Source: Dimorphilus gyrociliatus (Eukaryota > Animalia > Annelida). From it: a stretch of 64,000 bases of DNA. Location: NCBI GenBank assembly GCA_904063045.1, contig CAJFCJ010000014.1:434001-498000 (forward strand), written 5' to 3'. The position numbers and the translations under genes are program-made. Position 1 is the stretch's first letter, and each line of letters opens with the position of its first letter. This document shows, one piece after another, positions 2,055 to 52,338 of the stretch. The notes below the pieces were generated by a model, which worked only from the letters and a program-made list of their open reading frames with translations, was not told where the DNA came from and did not search any database.

Positions 2055-3363
2055 ATGTCTATAAAATTGTATAAAGCTGTTGGAGTGATGTCCGGAACGT
2101 CTTTAGACGGTCTAGATATATGCTACGTTCATTTTTATATAGATGAAGTAAACGAATCATGGAATTTCGAAGTGAAATGTGTAATAAATAATAAATTTGA
2201 ATTTCTAGGTTTCCTAGTAACATGATAATTAAATTGTAAACAGGCTGAAACAGTAGAATATTCTGATGAATGGTATGAAAAGCTATTTAACGCTGGATCA
2301 TTAACTGCTTTAGGATTAGTCAAATTAAATATTGATTATGGACATTTTATAGGAAAGGAAATTGAGAAGTTTGTCTCCAAATATAATCTTCAACCTGATG
2401 TTGCAGGATCGCATGGTAGATTGTATAGTAGTTATTTCTTAAATCGTTTTTATTTCGATATATTTTCAAAGGTCATACGATTTTCCACGAACCGTCTCAT
2501 GGATTAACCTTTCAACTCGGTTGTGGAGAGAGTAGTTCAGCATATCTAAGTTTTCCTTTGGTAACAAATTTCCGTATGAAGGATATTGTTTATGGAGGGC
2601 AAGGTGCACCTTTGGTTCCCAGTGCTGAAAGATTTCTATTTAACAACTACGAAGCTTGCCTAAATCTCGGGGGTATTGCTAACACTCATTTAGAAGATAC
2701 CGCTTTCGATATATGTCCTTGTAATATGCTACTTAATCATATTTGTCAAAGATTAAAACCACCGAGAAAATATGATGAAGACGGTCATATTTCAAAAGGG
2801 GGTAAACTAGTTAAGAGCTATGAAGATGCTTTAGAAAGCTTACAATACTACCAGGTCAGTATTGTACAAAGGTACTGCAAATTTGAAAAGAATCTGCAAA
2901 GACCTTTTAAAATAAAATGCCTTATTTATATTTTTTTGGAAAAAAGGTTTTCCTACAGATAAAGCCTCCAAAGAGTACCGGAAGAGAATGGTTCGAAAAA
3001 AACGTCATTCCCATCATTGAAAGTTGCTTAAAAAGCGGAATATCTCCCCAAGATCTCCTCTACACTTCAACGATGCATATTGTTAAGAGAATAACTTCTG
3101 CTTTTAGTGGTTTTAAAGGTAATTTGTTAATTACTGGTGGCGGAGCTTTTAATAGTTTCCTGATAAGTCTACTATCCGAAAAACTCAACAAAATTGGTAT
3201 CACATTAATTGTGGCTGAAAAAGATATTGTAGAATACAAAGAAGCTCTTATTTTTGCATTCTTTGCTGTTAAAAGATTATTAAATGAACCAAATGTATAT
3301 GGAGAATATACTGGCAGCAATATCAATTCAATCAGCGGAGCTCTACATAGCGGTTCAAATTAA
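2055..3363 (+). CDS. anmK: Anhydro-N-acetylmuramic acid kinase (AnmK family), bacterial-type, with 3 spliceosomal introns
   Basis: Spliced ORF (introns 2181-2243, 2416-2471, 2854-2958) gives AnmK motifs GVMSGTSLDG, GSHGHTIFH, NFRMKDIVYGGQGAPLVP, LNLGGIAN, PPKSTGREWF, ITGGGAFN, KEALIFA. Confidence 0.9.
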
Positions 3364-3818
3364 AGATATTCTATATTTTTATGTTATAATAATGTTTACA
3401 TATCTTTTGTGTGCAATAATGTCTATAAATCGAGCTTATTGATGAAAAAACTACTTTCTTTTCATTTTATTCCTGTATTTGGTCAATATCTTAAATATAC
3501 AAAAACCATCTATTATATTAAAAACAGAAGGAAACTCTAATCTATAAACTTTTGATATTATAATTAAAAGCTGATTAAAAAATAATTTCAGTTGGAAAAG
3601 TTATAAATTTTCACAGAAAAGAATAATTAATTTCGATTAAAAGTAATTCTGAAATTGATATTAAAAATTTTCTCTTTAATAACAGGTAAAATTTGTTTTA
3701 TCAAAGGAAAAGCTAGACTCCATTTTGAAATTCGAAGTAAAATCTCGACAGGGATAAAAAAGAAATTGTCAACAGAAGAAAATTCTTAAATTTATAATAA
3801 ATAGTATATTTACAGAAA

Positions 3819-3989
3819 ATGGACTTTGAGATTGAAAACATATTAAAATTTTCGTATTTCATAAAGTACGACAATAGAATTCGCCAACTTGTAATTATCC
3901 CAGCCGGTATAACACGTGATCATATGCAAATTACCCAACAACGCAGAAGACACGAAGGATTATTTTGTATTCGAAAAAAAGAAATTTAA
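3819..3989 (+). other. 56-codon ORF preceded by a splice acceptor and followed by a 44-bp GTAAGT...TTTCAG intron-like element; possible small transcript or upstream PNUTS leader
   Basis: TTTACAG|AAAATG at 3809-3821; ORF MDFEIENILKFSYFIKYDNRIRQLVIIPAGITRDHMQITQQRRRHEGLFCIRKKEI*; intron-like element at about 4046-4089. No recognisable homology. Confidence 0.2.
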
Positions 3990-4447
3990 GGATTAATTAA
4001 GGTGTGTTTACCTTCAAAAACTTCATTAAAATGTTTAGTAACCTTGTAAGTATGCTTTAGGGATAATAAATAAGTCAATTTATTTTCAGGATACATCAGA
4101 AAGTCGTCATCAGTCAGAAGACAGAAAACGTCACTGAAAATTTCGCATACACCTCACATATATAGCGATATTTTGCTCTTTTGAAGAATTATTAAAGTTT
4201 TTTCAATTGTTAGTAGGCGGTTTTGAACGTCCTGTTTAACTTTTTAGTAAAATAATGTGCCTCTTATAAGAAAAACGTACGTTTCGAGAAGACTGCTTGT
4301 AAAATGACAAATAATCGGGATCTTTAACCCTTTATTGCTGATATCGAAAGCTTTTAAATTCTTTCATGATTTTCAATATCTTTAAACTAAGAAAAATGTG
4401 TGAAAAATCGCGTATTACTTAGTTGAGTGTCATTGAAGGGCGTTAGT

Positions 4448-39942: not shown

Positions 39943-42900
39943 ATGGATCAAAGTACATTGGTAAGGCACTATTATTTTATACCTATTAGAGTTTATCTAA
40001 TAATTGCATAGATTTAGATCGGCCGTTATTTGTGAGGCAAGTCTTCACTTAAAAAAGAATGAGCAGAAATGAGAGCTTTATTTCATCTTAGGCATTGTTT
40101 AAAGATAATGTGTTTAAGTGAAGTTTATTATATACAAATATCATATTTCCTAAGATGGAATATGAAGCTGTTTACGAACACATTAGAGAGATGTTTACAG
40201 TTTCTATTTGACCGACTTTTAAACACGCTGATCCTATTACGTAGCTTGTACGATCGCTACCAATAAAGTCCTTTAGTTTGTATTTAACGTTTATTACCAC
40301 ATCGTAGGATATTATAGAGAAGACGAGAAGACGACGGGAGGCTTTGGAAAGGAAGAAAGCCGAACTATGCGTATCACCTATAAATGATTCATCGAACAAG
40401 CTACATTCCACTGAGGAACTATGCGGAACAAAACGAAGAACGCCACTAAGCGATGTTAAGAATACTACACCGAACAAAGAATCACCGCCAAAAAGACAGA
40501 AGAGCGACGTAGATGATGGACCCTCAAAAAACTCTGTTAAATTCCCATCTTTTGATCACTTAGAAGCAAGACCTTCTTTCAGAGCTCGTAAATGTCGGCT
40601 AGCTAGATTGGCTGATAATATTAATTCATGGGATGATGATCTAAATCGCGTTGACTATAGGGAATCACCAGAAAAGCCCAAAAGAGTCTGGACGCCCCCT
40701 CAATCCCCAAGCGCACAATATAATTCACCACAAAGAACGCCTAATCAAGTCAGAAATTTAGTTAGGTAGTATCTGACATGTTGTTTTTAAATAAAGCAGT
40801 CGTTTAATTAACCTTTGTAACAACAGTTCACCGGATAAGCCTAAAGTTTGGACTCCACCGAAGTCGCCAAGCGCACAGTATAACTCGCCCAAGAAAAATG
40901 CCTCTACAAGCAAGCTAATTGATAACGTCGAAAATGAAAAACCAAAGAAAACTCAAGCTCCAGCACCACCCCCTCCCGCCCCTCCTATTCAAGAAGAAGA
41001 ATCAACAAAACTTAATAAGACACCCTCTTTCATTAAAACACCGACAAAAAGCTTTTCCCCCGTGAAGTTTAGTCCAACTTCTCCTTCGTCTATTAGACCA
41101 AATCCAGTTATGGCTCCAAGAATCATTTCCAATCCACCTCCTACCGCAACAGTACCATCACCAGCAGCAGCTACCACAACTACAGTTCGTACAAAATTAT
41201 GGGAAGAAGCTATCAAGAAAAACGAAACGGAAAGGAAGACGGAAAAAGTTCCCGAAGTTCAAGAACGTAAGAAGATATGGGAGAAGAAAACTGATAATAT
41301 AACCACTAACAGAAGGGATAGTTTTGAACCGACGAAGATGCCAGTGCTTGCAAGGAAAAATATTTGGGAAAAAAGAATAGAGGAAAGTGAAGCGCTAACG
41401 AGAGATACATATACTCCCAAACGAGTAAATAAACCATCAACACCGATAGCGCATAGTCAAAGAGAAAACAAAAGCTTAGCTTCCGTATCGCAAGATGTTG
41501 TATCAGCACGAGTGCCCGCACCAAGGAATCATGTTAGTCAAACACCAAAAGCAGAACCCAAACCTACGACATCTGTAACAGCAACTGCGTCGAACCCCGA
41601 CCCAATGACAAGTTCACCATCCGTACCTATTAACCCGAAAAGTGCGGGTAAAAAGGGTATAGTAACAGGTAATGAGATATATTTTTAGTAAAGAATTTTG
41701 CGTAATTATTAGCCTTTAGCCAATTTTCGCGCTGCTTTATAGAACCCTTTACCCAGTTAATCAGTCCCCTACTACTAACGCTTAATCCAGAAATTTACTC
41801 AACAGAATACGAGCGCAATTTACGTGCAATGGGTTTTGAAATTAATTCTGTCGCTAATCTTGGACACGTTGCTACAGCAGATTTAACTGAAAGAAAAGCA
41901 AAGACACCCAAGCAAATCGAAGGCCCAAGGGAATCTACTCCTAAGCCACGTGAAGTGGAAAAACAGAGCACTAGTAGTATTTATAAATTTATTAAAGCTG
42001 CTAATGAAAAATCTACGCCTCAAGCTCATCGTCCTTCAAATGTTAAAACACCTACGGATGATGATTTCTATACTACTGATGAAGATCCTCTTGAGGTTAA
42101 TTATAAGAAGCCGAAAAATGAAGTTGCACAAGCACAACAAGTGGAAAGCGATGAGGAGGAGTACGAAGAAGAAATTACAGAGGTTACAACATCAACGGAA
42201 GAGTCTTTTGAAGTTTCTGAATCCTCTTATAGGTGGGTATTCTACGTGAATATTGTCAAATAGTTCAATAAAGGAACTAATATTTACATAGCGAAGAAGC
42301 TGAGGAGACGGGAGATTTACAAGATGACGAAGAGTACAACGATGAAGAGTATACTTTGGGAAGTATTGATAGTGAATCGTCTATGGAGGAGCAAAAGAAG
42401 AGAACACCCACTGCTTTTGATCAACGAAGAGTGCATTTTAAGCCAACATCCAGTTCGTCCAGTGATTCAACGTCTGTGTGTAGTTCTTCGTCGGTTGAGC
42501 AGCCCACAACCGTAGTTATGAGAGCTAAACCAATACCCGCTAAGCGTCATAACATTGAATCGGATGTGACTACCACAGATGACGAACAACCTTGCTATAT
42601 TAGCGTTGACATGTATAGGAAGAGTAGTAACTTAACAAATGGACCGGAACCTGTTAAAACTATTGTTCGACAAAGCGAAATGCATAAAAGAGGAGCGGCA
42701 AAATTGGCGGGTGAGACGAGTACTGTTCTAAAGAAACCAAAAGCACCAGAACCTTGTATAGCCCAGCGTCTAGCGGAATTAGAAGCTACAGTACAACATC
42801 AACAAAACGTTATCAATCAAACGTCGAACGCTTTAAATACGATATCGACCGATTCGCCTTTCGCTGGCGGAAGTGTGGAGCAAGTTGAGTGCAATCGTCT

Positions 42901-43939
42901 GTTGTTGGTTGCTTGTAAAAGACGGGAAGCCGCTCTTGCTGAGAGAAATAAATTAAAAGCCTTAGGAAGGGTTCCCACGTCTAACGGGCCTAGAGGATCG
43001 ATTACCTTATCTGATATTCGATTACCTTTGAAAACAGATTTCATGGGCCGAGTTGGGACCCAGCATGATAGATTCGCACACTTCTTTATTGTATCACTTC
43101 GACAAAGAGATAGGGTTGTCTTTACTGAAATGGTCTCGACTCACGACGGTATGGTCAGAGGATTAATGGAATTTCCAAATATGGTGAAATTTTCGGATAT
43201 AACTCAAGATTTCAAAATTGACGTAGAAGTTTATACAATGTCTGTTCCATTAACTCAACCTATGTCACCCTTTAAGAAGAAGACGCCGAAAAAATCTAAA
43301 CTTTCCCATCCGCATGGGCCAAATGTCGTTAGAATTAGCAATTTTGCCCAAGTAACTTCCACAACACTCGATATGAATTCTTTGGGAAAAAATCATTTTG
43401 GTTTAGAAAGGGTTCCGAAGTCTTGCCCCCTTTCCGGTTCCCTACACGTTACTATTCAATGTAGTATGGAAAGTACAATAGAAGAGAGTGGATGGTTAAC
43501 CATGTTCGAAGATGTCAGCGGCCTAGGAGCATGGGATAGACGATGGTGTAAATTAAAAAATGGACGAATATTTTATTGGAAGTATCCAAGCGAAGAAAAA
43601 GAAAATATGGAACCAATAGGTTTTATAGATATGAAAAATTGTATTACGCAATCAATAGATTTAATTCCGAGAGATATATGTGCTAGACCAAATACTTTTG
43701 AATTAGTTTGCGTAAGAAGACAAACAAGAGGAGATCATGATACACTTGTAACAAGCTGTTCAAACACTATGACTTCGACAAGATTCTGGCTATCGGCCGA
43801 TACAAGAGAAGAACGAGTTGTTTGGTGCGATGTACTAAACGAAGCACTACTTCACCTAAGAGCTTGGAATGTTGATGCTTTAAGGCCTATAAAAGCACCT
43901 CCTCGTCAAAGAGGGGGTAAATACGAATCGCAAATATAA
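39943..43939 (+). CDS. ANLN: Anillin (N-terminal motif, long S/T/P-rich region, anillin-homology domain, PH domain)
   Basis: MDQSTL|DIIEKTRRRREALERK; LARLADNINSWDDD; VEQVECNRLLLVACKRR, ITLSDIRLPLK; PH GWLTMFEDVSGLGAWDRRWC...CARPNTFEL. Confidence 0.93.
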
Positions 43940-44392: not shown

Positions 44393-44585
44393 TGACTTTC
44401 TCGTTTGCAGATAAAGTTTAGCCGTTTCGACCCTTGAAGGTCGGTGTGCCCTATACTAGAGAATATATTTTAGTCGAGGTCTTTGCTCGTTGCAGTTTAG
44501 TCGTTAAAGAACAGGTGAGATAGCATAATTAACTGTTATCGAATAGATTAATAGATAATCTATATATTGCAAGAAGAAATTGAAA

Positions 44586-45743
44586 ATGCCCCGTTTCGGA
44601 ACATACTTGTCGGAGGAGAAGAAAGCTGAATTGAAGAGAATTGCCGATGCCATTGTTGCTCCTGGCAAGGGCATTTTGGCTGCCGATGAATCGACTGGAA
44701 CCATGGGTAAACGTTTGACTGATATCAACGTTGAAAACGCTGAAGAGAACAGACGTCTATACAGACAATTGCTCTTTTCTACGGAAGCAAAACTGCTGTC
44801 TCAACATATTTCGGGAGTAATTTTGTTTCACGAAACCTTCTACCAAAAGGACGACCAAGGGCGACTCTTCCCCGACTTGCTCAAGTCGATCGGTATTATT
44901 CCCGGTATTAAGGTCGACAAGGGCGTTGTACCCTTGGCCGGCAGTGATGGCGAAGTAACAACTCAAGGTTTGGATGGTTTAGCAGAAAGATGCGCCGAAT
45001 ATAAGAAGGGCGGAGCTGATTTCGCAAAATGGCGTTGCGTCCTTAAAATCCAATCTCATACACCTAGCCTACAGGGTATGTTGGAGAACGCTAACGTCTT
45101 GGCAAGATACGCAAGTATTTGCCAACAGAATGGATTGGTGCCCATCGTTGAGCCAGAAATTTTACCTGACGGCGATCACGATTTAGAAACTTGCCAAAAG
45201 GTATCTGAACAAGTTTTGGCATTCGTCTACAAGGCACTAGCAGATCATCATGTCTACCTCGAAGGTACTTTGTTGAAACCAAACATGGTCACTCCTGGAC
45301 AATCTTGTCCAAAGAGAAGCACCCCTGAAGAAATTGCAAGAGCAACGGTAAAGCGCAAAACAATCTATTGTTATTAAATAAACAACTCTTATGTACTATT
45401 TTACTGACAGGTTACTGCTTTACAACGTACCGTACCGGCTGCCGTTCCAGGTGTCACCTTCTTATCTGGAGGTCAAAGCGAACAGGACGCGTCGGTTAAC
45501 TTGAACGCAATAAATAAATTCGAAGGGAAGAAACCATGGGCTTTAACCTTCTCTTACGGTAGAGCTTTACAAGCTTCAGTTCTAAAAGCATGGAAAGGAA
45601 GTAAGGATAATGTTGGCAAAGGTCAGGATGAATTGTTGAAGAGGGCGAGAGCTAACGGTCAAGCAGCTTTGGGAAAGTACGACGGAAAAATCGAAAGCGC
45701 CGCTGCTGGTGCTAGCTTGTTTGTCTCCAATCACGCCTATTAG
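44586..45743 (+). CDS. ALDO: Fructose-bisphosphate aldolase class I
   Basis: [34 protein letters not shown] (Schiff-base Lys), [17 protein letters not shown]-terminal SNHAY. One coding intron near 45348-45410. Confidence 0.98.
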
Positions 45744-46182
45744 AAAAAGAACGATAGAACGATAAAATATTTGTTTATAATATGTTTGTTTTTTCGTCTT
45801 CGTTACTCCTTAGAAAAGGCTTTAGCACCTGATTTCGTGTAGTGTGATTAAACGATTGTCTACGCCCCGTTTCTGTCTGTCTGTCTGTCTCTCTATCTCT
45901 CTCTATCTCTCTAAATATTAATATGTATACTGTATATATCGCAATATAATTATATTTTGAGAGAAAAGAGAAAATATGACTTTTCGAAACTCATTTAGTT
46001 ACAAATCTATACAAGATTTCTCCTGCATAACTTGGCTACTTTTATTCAAATTGTATAGGATTATATAAACGTCAAAAAGAAAGAAAATAGTATTAATAAA
46101 ATATCCTTACAACAGAATATATAAAGACGTATTTAAATAGATATTGTTAATGAAATTATATTGGACAGCGTAATAAGAAGAC

Positions 46183-46215
46183 GAAGAAGAAGAAGAAGAA
46201 GAAGAAGAAGAAGAA
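46183..46215. repeat. (GAA)n microsatellite
   Basis: Direct trinucleotide run. Confidence 0.95.
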
Positions 46216-46681
46216 AAAGTTCAAACTCGACTATACTGTATATACAAGCATATAAAGTTACTACTTTTATTACTAATATACAAGGTACAAGGTAGTACAG
46301 TACACTAGTTTCTTTTTTATTTACTAATAAAATGATTACTTTTAACTTTACGTAATAAAATTTTATAAAGATTGTAAAAAAAAAAGAGAATATAAACATT
46401 TCTTTTTATATTTACTCTTTCCTTTAACAAAGGATTCTTCCGGAAATTAAAAAGTAACGCCTTTTAGCAATAGCTATTTAAAATAATTCAAATTTATTTC
46501 GCACAACACCGATAAAGCATCACTGAGACAGATATGCTCCTCTATTTTTTTGTTCATTAATATAAAAAACAAAAAAACAAACATAATATATTAATCATGA
46601 ATATTCATTATACAATATTATTATATATATATATATTTACATAATAATATAAACTTTTAATTAAGAGAAAAAAAAACCCTT

Positions 46682-46835
46682 TGGACGGAATTTGATAGGG
46701 AATTTTTTCATAAAGAAAAAGAAATGGATTGTGATTTTAGTTGTTACAAAAAACAAAATTATAAACATATTAGTTAGAATTATCACAGTTTTTGCTTCGA
46801 TACACTGCAATCAAATACTGTCTACATTAGATGCG
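46682..46835 (-). promoter_or_regulatory. Cluster of extended miRNA target sites (miR-184, miR-2, miR-8; partial miR-7)
   Basis: The + strand reads TGGACGGA-ATT-TGATAGGG, TATCACAG-TTTTT-GCTTCGAT and AATACTGTC-TACATT-AGATG. The - strand therefore pairs with both the seed and the 3' end of each miRNA. miRNA sequences are recalled from knowledge, not searched. Confidence 0.65.
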
Positions 46836-49220
46836 GTACACTATCATCTGTGTACCTGTGAATAAATAAGCCAAACCATTACAACATCAATAGAAAATTA
46901 GTTCAAATTTTCTGTTTTTTTGTTACAACACCAAAATTAAAAAAAAAAAGCAAATCATCTATAAAAAAGCTATAAAAAAAAATACAACAATAATTAACTA
47001 ACTATCTAATTAATTAATTAATTAATTAAGTAACTAACCTACTTTTAAAAAAAAAAAGTTATCTTTCCCATTTTTTTAGTACACTATACAATTTTCTGTT
47101 TTTCTAAATTGGCACACAAACACCGACAAACATCTTTTTTCATAATTAATCCAAAAAAAAAAAAGAGAAAAAACAAAACAAACAAAACCAAAACATAGTT
47201 AAAATTGTGCAATAATTATAAATGATAATCGATAGATTAAGAAAGATAAAGGGAGAAAGGAAAGATTAAAAACCACTATTCTTGTTTGTTCGTAGAAGGT
47301 GTGTGGGGGGAGGGGGGAGAACAAACATTACTTATTTTCTGTCTACGACTAGCTTCTCTTCTTTTATCATTTTTTTTATCAAATGACGACGGCAAACCAA
47401 TTAAAAAAAATAGTTAAAAAAAATAGGTGTGAAGTTGCTAACGTTTGTTCTTGTTCTGTTTTGATTCTAGTAGTAGAAGTAGTGGTAGTGTTGTCGATGT
47501 TATTATTGATGGTGGTGGTCGTAGTGGTCGTGGTGGTAGTGGTGGTGGAATAAAACACTACTTTCTCACACTAAAAACTTGCGTGTGTAGTGATTTAGAA
47601 GAAGATTAAGAAAGGGCGAAGAAGATAGATGAAGAAAACAAACAGAGAAAAGAAACCCAACTTTTGGCACATATTGGAACAGTGCAGTTTGTTTTTTTTT
47701 TCTTTTTTTTTGTCTTTTTGTTTTCGTAAAGAGAAAAAAAAATCAAATAAAAAAAAAAGAACTTTAATTCTTTTTCTTGTTGTAATAATGAAGCGAGTAT
47801 TTTTTTCTTCTTGCCAAAATCAGCGTCCTAGATTTAATGAAAAAAAAAAGATAAGGCTTTATAACTTTACTTTGGCCTATATGATATACTTACAACTACA
47901 TTCCAATAGTAGTAGAGGGGGAGGGGCAGGGGGGACAAAGAGAGTAGAACGTTCAGAAGATTGTGTATTTATGTGCTAGTGTGTGTATGTGTGTCGGTGT
48001 ATGAGTGTGTATATAAGAGGTAGAGAGTGTGTATGTGTGTGACAGAGCGAGAGAGGAAGAGTCGGTATGGGACTGGGTGGGGGAGAATACAACAAGAGAA
48101 GACTTTGAATATTTCGTATTATCGTTTGTTGTTTGCGTATTTTCTGAAAGAAACACGAACCTCTGATTAAGTAAATATATGCAAAAGACCAATCAATAAA
48201 GCTATTAGAAACGTGATTGAACATTTTCATTTATAATCTCTATTGCTAATTGACAAAAGACAGAATCTTACGTTCATATAGTAGTCAATAGCTTAGATTT
48301 AAGGTTTGTGAAAATATCATACCTATTTAAAAACTCGCTTGATCGTCATTCAATTCGAGAGAATAAGAAAAAATACGGAGAAAATCTCCTTATTTTTCTT
48401 CTTCCTTCTCCTTTTCGTATTCTTTTATTGTTTTAGTTTAGTTAATAATTCAAATCTCCCCTTCTTCCTCCTCGTACTCTCTGAATCTCCAGAAAAAACC
48501 AAATTCTTTATCATTTCCAAATAATATTCAGTCCTTCGAAAGGGAATCCGCCTTCCCTTCCCCCTCTTTAGAATTGATTAACGTCACAACATTATCAAAT
48601 GCAGTTGACGGGAATGCAGTATTTAAGGAAAAAGCTGTAAAAAAAAATATTATAGAAAATTGTAAACGATATTTAAACTCCGTTCAAACTTGTTCAAGAG
48701 TTATGAACGTGTTTCGGGTATTATTATTATTTTTTAATGCAAATAGTAGGCCTTGCAAAAAGATTTCTTTTTAGAGTTCGATAGCGATAAGACTCTCGTT
48801 ATAAGTATTAAAAAATATATGACTGATAAGCCTAATCGTCGACTCCTGTCGCAAATTTCGTTCAATTTCTGTATTAATCTAAGCAATATAGTCTATATTG
48901 AAATTTATTAAAAATCTCTCTTTTGATGTTTAAGAGAAAAATCATTCTCTTCATGCCTTTCTTCTTTTCTCACATCATTGATTAAAATATTCTATTGAAC
49001 ACCAATTAAAACGATACGTATATAGAATAAACTATATTCACTAACATAGTATATATACATATTGGTAGAATGCTAAATTCTCTTCCCTAATTACTGTTCA
49101 TTAGGAAAAGAGAGATAAGAAATAGGTGCGGCCTAAAATAAACTTTTATAGCGTTAAACTTACCGTTCCGCTGACTTTGAACGCTTAGCCTGCAATCGAA
49201 GTTGTCCGGGACTACGCCGC

Positions 49221-49228
49221 CTTTTATA
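49221..49228 (-). promoter_or_regulatory. TATA box of the minus-strand non-coding transcript
   Basis: TATAAAAG with an Inr-like TTCGATT about 30 bp downstream and a 5' splice site about 35 nt further. Confidence 0.55.
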
Positions 49229-49871
49229 GACGAGTTGAACGCGCCGAACACGCCTAAACGCGTTTATTAAACAGATTACGTTCCGATTGTTTCTATTATC
49301 TTTAAGTCGAATGCCCAACAAGAGTCTTTAAGCAATGTGTCAGGGCAGGAAAGAAAGGAAATAACCCTTTTATTTTTTTTTACTTTTTAACCCCTCCTTC
49401 TTTTCCCATTTATCCGTACACGTCTCATTTTCTAACCCCGCCCCTTATCCCCTTTTTGGCTATTTTTATCTTGAGGCTTACGTAAGGACTAAGAGACGAA
49501 TGAAAGAAGAGAGAGAGAGAGAGAGAAAAGGAGTGAATGAGTGGGTGAAAAAAAAAGAGAGAGAGAGAAGGCGGAGGAGAAGACATTCCATTTGCCGCTC
49601 CCATTTAATATGCATATATACCTTGTATATGTTTTTTTCCACCCAAGTTTATTATTATACTTAATAAACATATTAAGAAAAAACTACTAAAAGATTCGTT
49701 TAAACAAGCCGACATATTTTTCTTTTTTACTTAATTCTAGTAATTTGAATCTTTCTCCGCTCACCAACCGCACGCACGCCACCTATTGTTTGCACGATAC
49801 CCTGTTTACGCGGGTAAATATTCGAAAAATAATCTCTGCTTCACTCTGCATTTTTTTTTAAAAACAACAAT

Positions 49872-52338
49872 ATGTTCCTAGTCGTCCTTTTGTTAAGCTT
49901 GAAATTTTGTACGGGTATGTAGTCACTTTCTTTTCCCTTTTCTCTTTGTCTGTTCCTAATCTCCTTCTTCCTCCCTTTTTTCCCCCCCTCTTTTCCACAT
50001 CTCCCACCCTTAACCTCCTTTCCTTCTCTACGAATAGTTTTCGTCTTCCTTTTCAGCGACGACTCCATTCCCGTGTAATGGATTGTTCTTTGAAGATTAC
50101 TGTTATATCTTGTCAGAAAAGTTCCTTACGTGGGAAAAGGCTGAGGATGAGTGTAAAAAAACTGGTGGAACTTTAGCTACCGTTCCAACTACAACTATCA
50201 ACAAAAAACTTAAGGATGTACTAATTAAATCTAGCGCTTTAGACGCATCGTGGATCGGTGGTCAAGAAAGGGAATTTCTATGGATGTGGGTAACCGACGG
50301 TTCGCTCTTAGCCGCGCAAGGGTGCTATAAAGATAAACCAAACGATAGAGATTTGAGCGTTGTTGTTGAAATTCCTCTTCTATTACCTTCTAAGTGTATG
50401 TCAAGCTGCAAGGCCAGAGGTTACACTTACGCCGCCGTTCAGGTTTGATTACTTTTTACGTCCTTAAAAAACAAAAAAAAATAACGGTCAATTAAAATCT
50501 TATGTTCAGAATGGAAAAGATTGTTTTTGCGGTAATTCATTCGGCAAACACGGTTTTCAAGCAAATGGATGTAAAAAGTCGTGTTCAGGAAGTATACCAG
50601 GAACGGTTGCTTGGTGCGGTGGCGTCAATCAAAACTTTATTTGGAGAGTAGATGGTATTTATCAATATTTGTCTTTATATAGATTAACTTCTTATTTATA
50701 AATGTATTTTTAAAAGGGAAAGAGAAAATTCCCCTTTACTACATTTATTATGAATATAGATTATATAAGATAATTACCTAACCGTTAATCTTTAATCTCT
50801 CTTACTACATCGCTTGCTTATTTATTTCTCTATCTATCTATCTATCCCTCTACAGGAACCTATTCCCTATTCGGCTACGGTCAACCCAACAACTATAGAG
50901 GTTATCAACATTGCGGAGTGTTTGATACCAAAATTAGTAATAAATTCGCCGATGAAGAATGTAGAAAATTATTGGGATTTATATGCGATATCAGTTAGTA
51001 TACTTTAGGCCTATACTTGTTAAATATTAACATTAAAAATATTTTAAATATTTTTCCCTTTCCAACTAAACTAAGAACATTCTTTTTGTATTTTGAAAAA
51101 GGATTTGAATGGTGCAGAAATTCTCTCGACTATTTTAAGAATGAAACGTCTGGAAGATGCTATTATATAAGTCCCAGTGTTCCTCAACGATATTCTTGGT
51201 ATACGGCTAGACAAAAGTGTATTGATCTTGGGGGTGATCTGGTAAAAGTCGATTCTCTAGACAAACACAACGATATGATAGAATATATCAAAATATCTAG
51301 AGAAAGGGTGGACGACAAGAAAAAGAGAATAGTTCAATATTGGATGGGTATGTCTAAAGGCGGTTGGACTTGGAGCGGAGGTGAACCATTCGGTTTTAAT
51401 AATTGGGGAGATCGTCAACCAGACGACGAAAATCACAAGTGTATTACACTAGATCCATCTCTTGACTACGAGTGGAACGATGAAGATTGTCAAGAGTTAA
51501 GGAGGTTTATCTGTAGATACGGTACGTTAAAAAAAAAAAGAGAGAGAGATAAGAGTCTAATCTCTTAACGAGAACGTAAAATAGTACTTTATCACCTTAT
51601 TTTATATACATGTACTATATTATATTTCTGCTAGACAGTTAAGCATTGTTTAATCTTTATCAAAGGGAAAGGAAAAGTTCCCACACCACCTACTCTACCA
51701 CCAGTTGAAACTTCTACTAGACAAAAAACAACTAAAACTACCCAAATAAAAACTACACCAACAACAATTAAAAAATCTAGCTCAACTTTATTAACAACTC
51801 CTAAGCAAACAACTTATCAAAATACCGTCGAACCGTCCGAAGGAAATCGTATTAAAGATGACGGTCTTAGCAGTCTAGAAATAGGTTTGCTTTGTTTATA
51901 TTTGAATTTTTTTACACAATTAATAATAATCTGTCTTCTACATTGTTTACCTTTATTCAAACAAAACGATTCGTGTTCGTCTATTGTATAGGATTAATCA
52001 TCTTTTTGACGATATTGGCTATATTACTATTTATAGGCCTATTAATCCTATGCTGCTATTGCGCTACTAAAAGAGATAGAAAGTAAGTGTTTATAAATAA
52101 TCTCTAGCTTTTTAAGGATTAAAAACAATTGTTAAATTATAATAGAATTCATCCGAAGACAAAGTCATTTAATGGATTTGACGCAAGAGAAGAAGCCAAA
52201 ATACCTAATTGCGGCAGACCATCGGATTTATTCGTAATTGATCCATATAATATCAATTATCCGGCTGGGCATTCAAAGTATATTAAAGAGTATCCAGTGA
52301 ATCAAATAGACGATCAAACAGTATTAATGAAATATTAA
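49872..52338 (+). CDS. Type I membrane C-type lectin receptor: CTLD with nested WSC domain, second CTLD (QPD/WND), Thr-rich stalk, TM, cytoplasmic tail
   Basis: Signal exon MFLVVLLLSLKFCT|A; all exons join in phase. WSC GCYKD...CMSSCKARGYTYAAVQNGKDCFCG; GQPNN; RQPDD and WNDEDC; TM LIIFLTILAILLFIGLLILCCYC. Confidence 0.85.

Follow-up and report, generated by a model that had tools for sequence, protein, structure and literature searches.

Our analysis of a 64-kb window of the Dimorphilus gyrociliatus genome (the window being the whole stretch of DNA under study) identified a previously unannotated, very highly expressed long noncoding RNA (lncRNA) that carries, in its last exon, three sequences complementary to the microRNAs (miRNAs) miR-184, miR-2, and miR-8. 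On balance, we favor the interpretation that the three matches arose by chance, within the AU-rich final exon of an lncRNA that is itself real and very abundant. We found no evidence that the sites are selected, nor that any miRNA is titrated or destroyed through them, and we infer that the sites themselves are not under selection. The lncRNA, with its conserved promoter and first exon, is a better-founded target for follow-up work than the miRNA sites, since both of these elements are far better conserved than the neighboring protein-coding DNA.

Structure and expression of the minus-strand transcript

It had been proposed in the preliminary description that a minus-strand RNA would present the three segments as target sites. 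RNA contigs revealed that such an RNA exists, and that it is spliced, apparently noncoding, and very abundant. Our model of the transcript is TATA driven and comprises four exons totaling 1785 nt, all on the minus strand. The TATA box (TATAAAAG; 49221-49228, minus strand) is kept in a relative (see below). Exon 1 (49164-49198), the start of which was placed by reference to the TATA box, is nearly invariant in that relative and ends at a GTAAGT donor that is directly shown; the 16-nt loose end that a contig from run X5 has at 48635 matches 49180-49165 in reverse complement, after which the genome reads GTAAGT. This loose end thereby joins exon 1 to exon 2 (48323-48634), which is represented by pieces of two contigs (X5 record 23 and X1 record 3). 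Exon 3 (47894-48143) is bounded by joints at 47826>47893 and 48143>48323; both read CT..AC on the plus strand (that is, GT..AG on the minus strand), and both were recovered in the independent runs X5 and X1. The terminal exon, exon 4 (46640-47827), follows an acceptor AG at 47829-47828 and has a putative 3′ end near 46640. Coverage ends just beyond a poly(A) signal, ATTAAA (46656-46661, minus strand), which is the sole minus-strand poly(A) signal between 46900 and 46500. Since Logan contigs are undirected, we deduced the strand of exon 4 from its continuity with the spliced exons and from the ATTAAA signal. With three GT..AG introns, a TATA box, a poly(A) signal, and no credible open reading frame (ORF), the transcript has the features of a spliced Pol II-derived lncRNA. 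A protein-coding role was considered and rejected; no ATG-initiated ORF in the 1785-nt model is longer than 35 amino acids, and a 116-amino-acid antisense ORF yielded only low-complexity matches. A micropeptide is possible.

We regard run X5 as RNA because its contigs lack the aldolase intron. In this run, the lncRNA is covered from 46668 to approximately 48634 at word depths of 2500 to 4200, compared with 3365 for aldolase. Within exon 4, contigs span 46668-46971 (depth, 2541) and 47199-47512 (depth, 4217), and the region harboring the three sites is covered. The sites lie 42 to 195 nt from the putative 3′ end, i.e., in the last ~200 nt of the RNA. Runs X1 to X4 (coral, invertebrate, and marine metatranscriptomes), compared with the window over 44575-48634, also contain a Dimorphilus-like aldolase along with the spliced lncRNA; the aldolase of X1 shows near identity, and X3 is diverged by approximately 3%. 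Given that these environmental metatranscriptomes carry the spliced form, the lncRNA is expressed in populations from the wild or from aquaria, and one diverged lineage or more also expresses it. Microsatellites at 47510-47548 and 46168-46228, made up of (GGT/ACC)n-like and (GAA)n trinucleotides, attract contigs of many unrelated organisms and lead to false depth peaks (up to ~960) in X1 to X3.

The transcript, read from the minus strand, is convergent with a class I fructose-bisphosphate aldolase gene (coding sequence, 44586-45346 and 45410-45743, plus strand; 3′ untranslated region [3′UTR] to at least 46167). The aldolase intron is of the GT..AG type (X5 record 20), and the upstream exon is 100% identical to DgyrCDS9758. 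Directly upstream of aldolase is an anillin/PH-domain gene (42356-43939, plus strand; L001:7969-9408 in the relative), and the order of bromodomain gene, anillin, and aldolase is also found in a 60-kb contig of the relative. On the other side, downstream of the lncRNA promoter, lies a tandem series of C-type lectin-domain exons or genes (49847-51568, plus strand). The first lectin unit is spliced (GT..AG joint, 49913>50056), and its protein is 82% identical to an ORF of the relative.

Could the site region simply be a long plus-strand 3′UTR of aldolase? An RNA of this kind would be miRNA sense and, hence, unable to pair with the miRNAs. The Logan contigs, being devoid of strand information, would allow for this, and aldolase and the site region are similar in depth. 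However, aldolase coverage ends at 46167, and X5 depth is zero at 46341-46539. Moreover, from 46668 onward a similar depth runs into exons that are joined by minus-strand GT..AG introns, and the sole poly(A) signal near the edge of coverage is on the minus strand. We therefore rejected placement of the sites within the aldolase 3′UTR, on account of the gap in coverage and the splice sites of the minus strand, and consider this interpretation extremely improbable and essentially excluded.

Conservation of the promoter, first exon, and first intron

The relative is represented by Logan assemblies of the SRR23372228 lineage. Its aldolase exon protein is 94% identical to that of D. gyrociliatus, and the coding DNA is 75 to 80% identical. 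Against this background, a block comprising the lncRNA promoter, the TATA box, exon 1, and the first ~45 nt of intron 1 (49134-49366, minus strand; L005:629-952) is approximately 96% identical, making it the best-conserved DNA in the neighborhood; within the block, a run of 68 nt upstream of the TATA box is invariant. A second block, corresponding to the last ~210 nt of intron 1 (48639-48848, minus strand; L005:11-220), is 81% identical and contains long invariant runs. Both blocks exceed the neighboring coding DNA in identity, and the intron 1 block also exceeds the flanking noncoding DNA. That the promoter and exon 1 are conserved above the level of coding DNA suggests that selection acts on the transcript or, at the least, on the act of transcribing it. 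Judging from this pattern of sequence conservation, the lncRNA itself is probably functional.

The conserved portion of intron 1 may conceal an intronic RNA or a regulatory element (48639-48848), a possibility raised by its conservation. A search of this portion against Rfam returned no match at an E value of ≤1, and the idea that the lncRNA is a snoRNA host gene was set aside on the same result. We also considered whether the conserved exon 1 might belong to a spliced-leader RNA; the 5′ leaders of the aldolase and lectin genes differ from exon 1, and this candidate was rejected.

In the relative, the region corresponding to the three sites falls between contigs. The contigs anchored in aldolase (L001 to L004) end approximately 830 nt after the aldolase stop codon, in a TA-rich repeat, and align to the window only as far as 45851, with a weaker patch to ~45960, while the contig anchored in the lectin gene (L005) starts at the equivalent of window position ~48629, in a poly-T run. 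The 827-nt tail downstream of the relative's aldolase contains no 7-mer seed match for miR-184, miR-2, or miR-8. Metagenome scans using the invariant promoter stretch, and using a pattern that takes in both the miR-2 and the miR-8 site, returned no match. ORF-based and representative searches for the segment that the relative's contigs do not cover also returned no match, and the window's own ORF was likewise absent from the record searched.

Three miRNA-like segments and their chance level

Direct reading of the sequence revealed the three plus-strand segments, within 154 nt, exactly as they had first been described. The miR-184-like segment (46682-46700) matches the miRNA at all eight of nt 1 to 8, followed by a 3-nt loop (versus 4 nt in the miRNA) and then by 5 plus 3 matches with one A skipped. 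The miR-2-like segment (46781-46801) also matches at nt 1 to 8 (8/8) and continues, after a 5-nt loop (versus 3 nt), with 8 positions that include one C-for-U change (a G:U pair in the duplex). In the miR-8-like segment (46814-46833), nt 2 to 10 are matched (9/9), and 5 further matches follow a 6-by-6 loop in register. Viewed from the minus strand, these become putative target sites. The miR-184-complementary site (46682-46700, minus strand), approximately 42 nt from the putative RNA 3′ end, is predicted to form a duplex of −23.2 kcal/mol. This duplex has an 8mer seed match with an A opposite nt 1, a G:U pair at nt 9, and a 3-by-2 loop; 8 pairs then extend over nt 13 to 21, with a one-base bulge separating the first 5 (contiguous) from the last 3. 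The site complementary to miR-2a-type miRNAs (46781-46802, minus strand; −20.4 kcal/mol) has an 8mer seed match, a 3-by-5 loop, and 9 contiguous pairs over nt 12 to 20 (two of them G:U), the last 2 to 4 nt of miR-2a being largely unpaired. The miR-8-complementary site (46814-46834, minus strand; −17.2 kcal/mol) pairs with nt 2 to 10, has no A opposite nt 1, and, beyond a 6-by-6 internal loop, forms 5 Watson-Crick pairs plus one G:U pair over nt 17 to 22.

The seed pairing presupposes that the D. gyrociliatus seeds are the conserved ones, and the 3′ pairing presupposes the reference 3′ ends; in MirGeneDB 3.0, D. gyrociliatus is a genome-only species. The miR-184 and miR-8 reference sequences are reported to be unchanged from insects, or many arthropods, to the snail Biomphalaria. 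Lophotrochozoan miR-2 paralogs have a common seed and differing 3′ halves. For miR-2a, the sequence employed in the duplex is presumably that of miRBase.

The plus-strand segments are not miRNA genes in their own right. As the preliminary description had noted, none lies in a hairpin of pre-miRNA quality; six 111-nt folds, taken from both strands, gave z-scores of −0.96 to +0.90 relative to shuffled sequences. Rfam yielded no miRNA family match at the gathering threshold anywhere in the 64-kb window and, locally, no mir-184, mir-2, or mir-8 match even at an E value of ≤10. An miRNA precursor would be expected to show a hairpin of ~60 to 80 nt with a mature arm and a covariance model match, and this was found for none of the three families. 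Furthermore, the middles of the segments diverge from the miRNAs, and the mir-184, mir-2, and mir-8 families are not known to occur as a cluster. It is true that the segments are sense-strand matches to three mature miRNAs, as decayed or unusual miRNA genes would be. Nevertheless, the absence of hairpins and of Rfam matches rules out plus-strand miRNA genes, and we regard this explanation as having next to no probability and as effectively excluded. Folding of both strands of the region predicted a single stable hairpin, formed by a 7-bp perfect inverted repeat (GGTACAC...GTGTACC; 46836-46857) that adjoins the miR-8-like site.

In order to interpret the three sites as a cluster, one needs to know how often such clusters arise by chance. 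Our reference set consisted of 54 conserved families (bilaterian, protostome, and lophotrochozoan), each represented by its 5′ end; we defined a seed match as at least 8 nt starting at nt 1 or 2 and a cluster as three families on the same strand within 154 nt. The 64-kb window contains 81 such matches on the plus strand and 91 on the minus strand. A three-family cluster occurred in 94% of Markov-simulated windows, and composition-matched pseudo-miRNAs gave ~4.8 clusters per window when applied to the real sequence. The seed cluster alone is therefore uninformative, and a signal in the clustering of the three seeds is not supported. Nor are conserved seeds enriched in the lncRNA, where 6 8-mers were observed versus 3.4 expected (P = 0.15; for 7-mers, P = 0.26), and the other 8-mer sites in the lncRNA (for miR-375, miR-315, and miR-96) show no 3′ pairing. 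More generally, given that seed clusters are to be expected in nearly every 64-kb window, similar calls deserve to be discounted where 3′ pairing, expression, and conservation do not all point the same way.

The 3′ pairing is a different matter, at least in part. With the seed kept and the flanks shuffled, P values were 0.027 for miR-184, 0.0034 for miR-2, and 0.15 for miR-8; with the 3′ halves of the miRNAs shuffled instead, they were 0.020, 0.011, and 0.22, respectively. Thus, of the 3′ pairing that had been put forward, that of miR-184 and miR-2 is nominally unusual relative to shuffled controls, and that of miR-8 is ordinary (P of 0.15 to 0.22). In 2500 simulations, the summed 3′ energy of the three sites (−27.2) was matched by 0.08% of chance clusters (per-cluster P = 0.0008), and in 0.4% of windows the best cluster attained it (per-window P = 0.004). 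A Fisher combination of the shuffled-3′-half values is approximately 0.003, which, multiplied by 4.8 clusters, becomes ~0.014 per window. Taken over the 1317 windows of this genome, per-window P values of 0.004 to ~0.014 translate to ~5 to 20 equally good clusters by chance, and this estimate precedes the free choice among miR-2 paralogs, which inflates chance further. By rough reckoning, limiting the count to mature noncoding exons in pairing orientation would leave about one chance cluster. The 3′ pairing signal does not survive genome-wide multiple testing; carried as it is by the miR-184 and miR-2 sites, we consider it suggestive and not decisive.

It is largely on these grounds that we lean toward fortuitous matches. 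The ubiquity of seed clusters in simulated and pseudo-miRNA comparisons, the lack of seed enrichment, the lack of 3′ pairing at the miR-375, miR-315, and miR-96 sites, the ordinary 3′ pairing of miR-8, the ~5 to 20 equivalent clusters expected across the genome, and the seed-free 827-nt tail of the relative are all in keeping with this interpretation. Several features sit less comfortably with it. Few chance clusters (0.08%) attain the 3′ pairing that the three sites show in sum; the sites are oriented as targets and fall within the final ~200 nt of an RNA that is as abundant as aldolase mRNA; the promoter and exon 1 of this RNA far exceed neighboring coding DNA in conservation; and two of the three seed matches are predicted to be accessible in the RNA fold (unpaired probability, 0.59).

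Ordinary target sites, miRNA buffers, and TDMD triggers

Given the abundance of the RNA and the full 8mer matches at two of the sites, binding by the cognate miRNAs would be expected, as at ordinary seed sites, wherever they are coexpressed with it, and such binding is predicted to include some 3′-supplementary pairing. Like ordinary 8mer or 7mer-m8 targets, the miR-184 and miR-2 sites combine a perfect seed match with at least 3 to 5 pairs that start near nt 12 to 13. They differ from such targets in their setting, in that ordinary targets usually are recognized by 3′UTR conservation, whereas the present host is an lncRNA.

One possibility, which we regard as doubtful but by no means far-fetched, is that selection maintains the sites for miR-184 and miR-2 (and perhaps that for miR-8) as canonical sites, such that the miRNAs repress the lncRNA, or the lncRNA buffers the miRNAs, with no degradation involved. 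The 8mer seed matches with nominally unusual 3′ pairing are consistent with this, as are the abundance and noncoding nature of the host, its strongly conserved promoter and exon 1, and the location of the sites near the RNA 3′ end with two seed matches predicted to be open. However, the predicted fold of the RNA itself leaves the miR-2 seed match mostly paired (unpaired probability, 0.17), significance is lost under genome-wide multiple testing, and there is no overall enrichment of sites. A single site per family also makes for a weak sponge. CDR1as is a sponge for miR-7, and in effective sponges a single family is served by many sites. The present lncRNA resembles CDR1as, and sponges or competing RNAs generally, in being an abundant noncoding RNA with miRNA sites; it differs in that each family is represented by one site rather than by multiple sites, and in that sites are not enriched.

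The preliminary description had ascribed to all three sites the architecture of TDMD triggers. According to a review of TDMD, seed pairing is universal among triggers, and 12 of 13 validated triggers form 6 or more contiguous 3′ pairs, in many cases from nt 12 to 13 onward, as opposed to 3 to 5 supplementary pairs in ordinary targets. Assuming conserved seeds, all three sites show seed pairing (8mer, 8mer, and nt 2 to 10), and they reside in an RNA that is expressed in the pairing orientation, as deduced for the strand of exon 4. With regard to 3′ pairing as predicted from the reference 3′ ends, the ascribed architecture holds up for the miR-2 site, where 9 contiguous pairs begin at nt 12, albeit with wobbles and with the 3′ end of an assumed paralog. 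It does not hold for the miR-184 site, with 5 contiguous 3′ pairs, or for the miR-8 site, with 5 to 6 pairs from nt 17.

In Drosophila, Kah harbors a trigger cluster for miR-9b as well as the miR-279 family (Hiers et al., Cell Rep 2025, PMC12573233), which means that a trigger for several families, as envisaged here, is no longer unprecedented. One of the Kah triggers functions with minimal or noncanonical 3′ pairing (PMC12573233), and weak pairing therefore does not by itself exclude TDMD. The likeness lies in the close spacing of sites for unrelated miRNA families on one transcript. The differences are that Ago1-CLASH identified the Kah sites and changes in miRNA levels validated them, while the present sites are sequence predictions, and that Kah is a protein-coding mRNA acting on other miRNA families, while the present host is an apparent lncRNA.

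A multifamily TDMD trigger would operate as follows: the tail of the lncRNA would bind AGO-miR-2 and AGO-miR-184 (and, less likely, AGO-miR-8) and recruit ZSWIM8/Dora, whereupon the miRNAs would be destroyed. All three sites do combine seed pairing, a central loop, and 3′ pairing; the miR-2 site has the run of at least 6 contiguous pairs typical of 12 of the 13 validated triggers; the RNA is abundant and noncoding, as are Marge and Cyrano; and Kah provides precedents for both minimal 3′ pairing and a two-family cluster. Against this, the miR-184 site has just 5 contiguous 3′ pairs, and the 5 to 6 pairs of the miR-8 site come from nt 17, after a 6-by-6 loop. Likewise, the last 2 to 4 nt of miR-2a would be largely unpaired, and miR-2 paralogs differ in their 3′ ends. 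Statistical support is also weak, the seed cluster being at chance level and seeds showing no enrichment. We consider such a trigger to be decidedly unlikely. It is just as improbable, in our estimation, that the last 200 nt of this lncRNA, with its ultraconserved promoter and exon 1, serve as a clustered trigger or decoy for two or more unrelated ancient miRNA families, namely, miR-184 and miR-2 and possibly miR-8. Were it so, this would be the first TDMD-type trigger cluster to be described in a lophotrochozoan. If the sites are functional in any of these ways, miRNA turnover or buffering by noncoding RNAs would extend from flies, worms, and vertebrates to the Lophotrochozoa, and the lncRNA would be a second naturally occurring case in which a single transcript acts on several miRNA families.

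In this regard, the closest noncoding parallels are the Drosophila lncRNA Marge (CR43432), which acts on the miR-310 family, and vertebrate Cyrano, which acts on miR-7; both, like the present RNA, are noncoding transcripts with a site that combines a seed match, a loop, and 3′ pairing. Conserved sites are a feature of those two triggers, and Cyrano forms 14 contiguous 3′ pairs with its miRNA, compared with 5, 9 (including two wobbles), and 5 to 6 at the miR-184, miR-2, and miR-8 sites.
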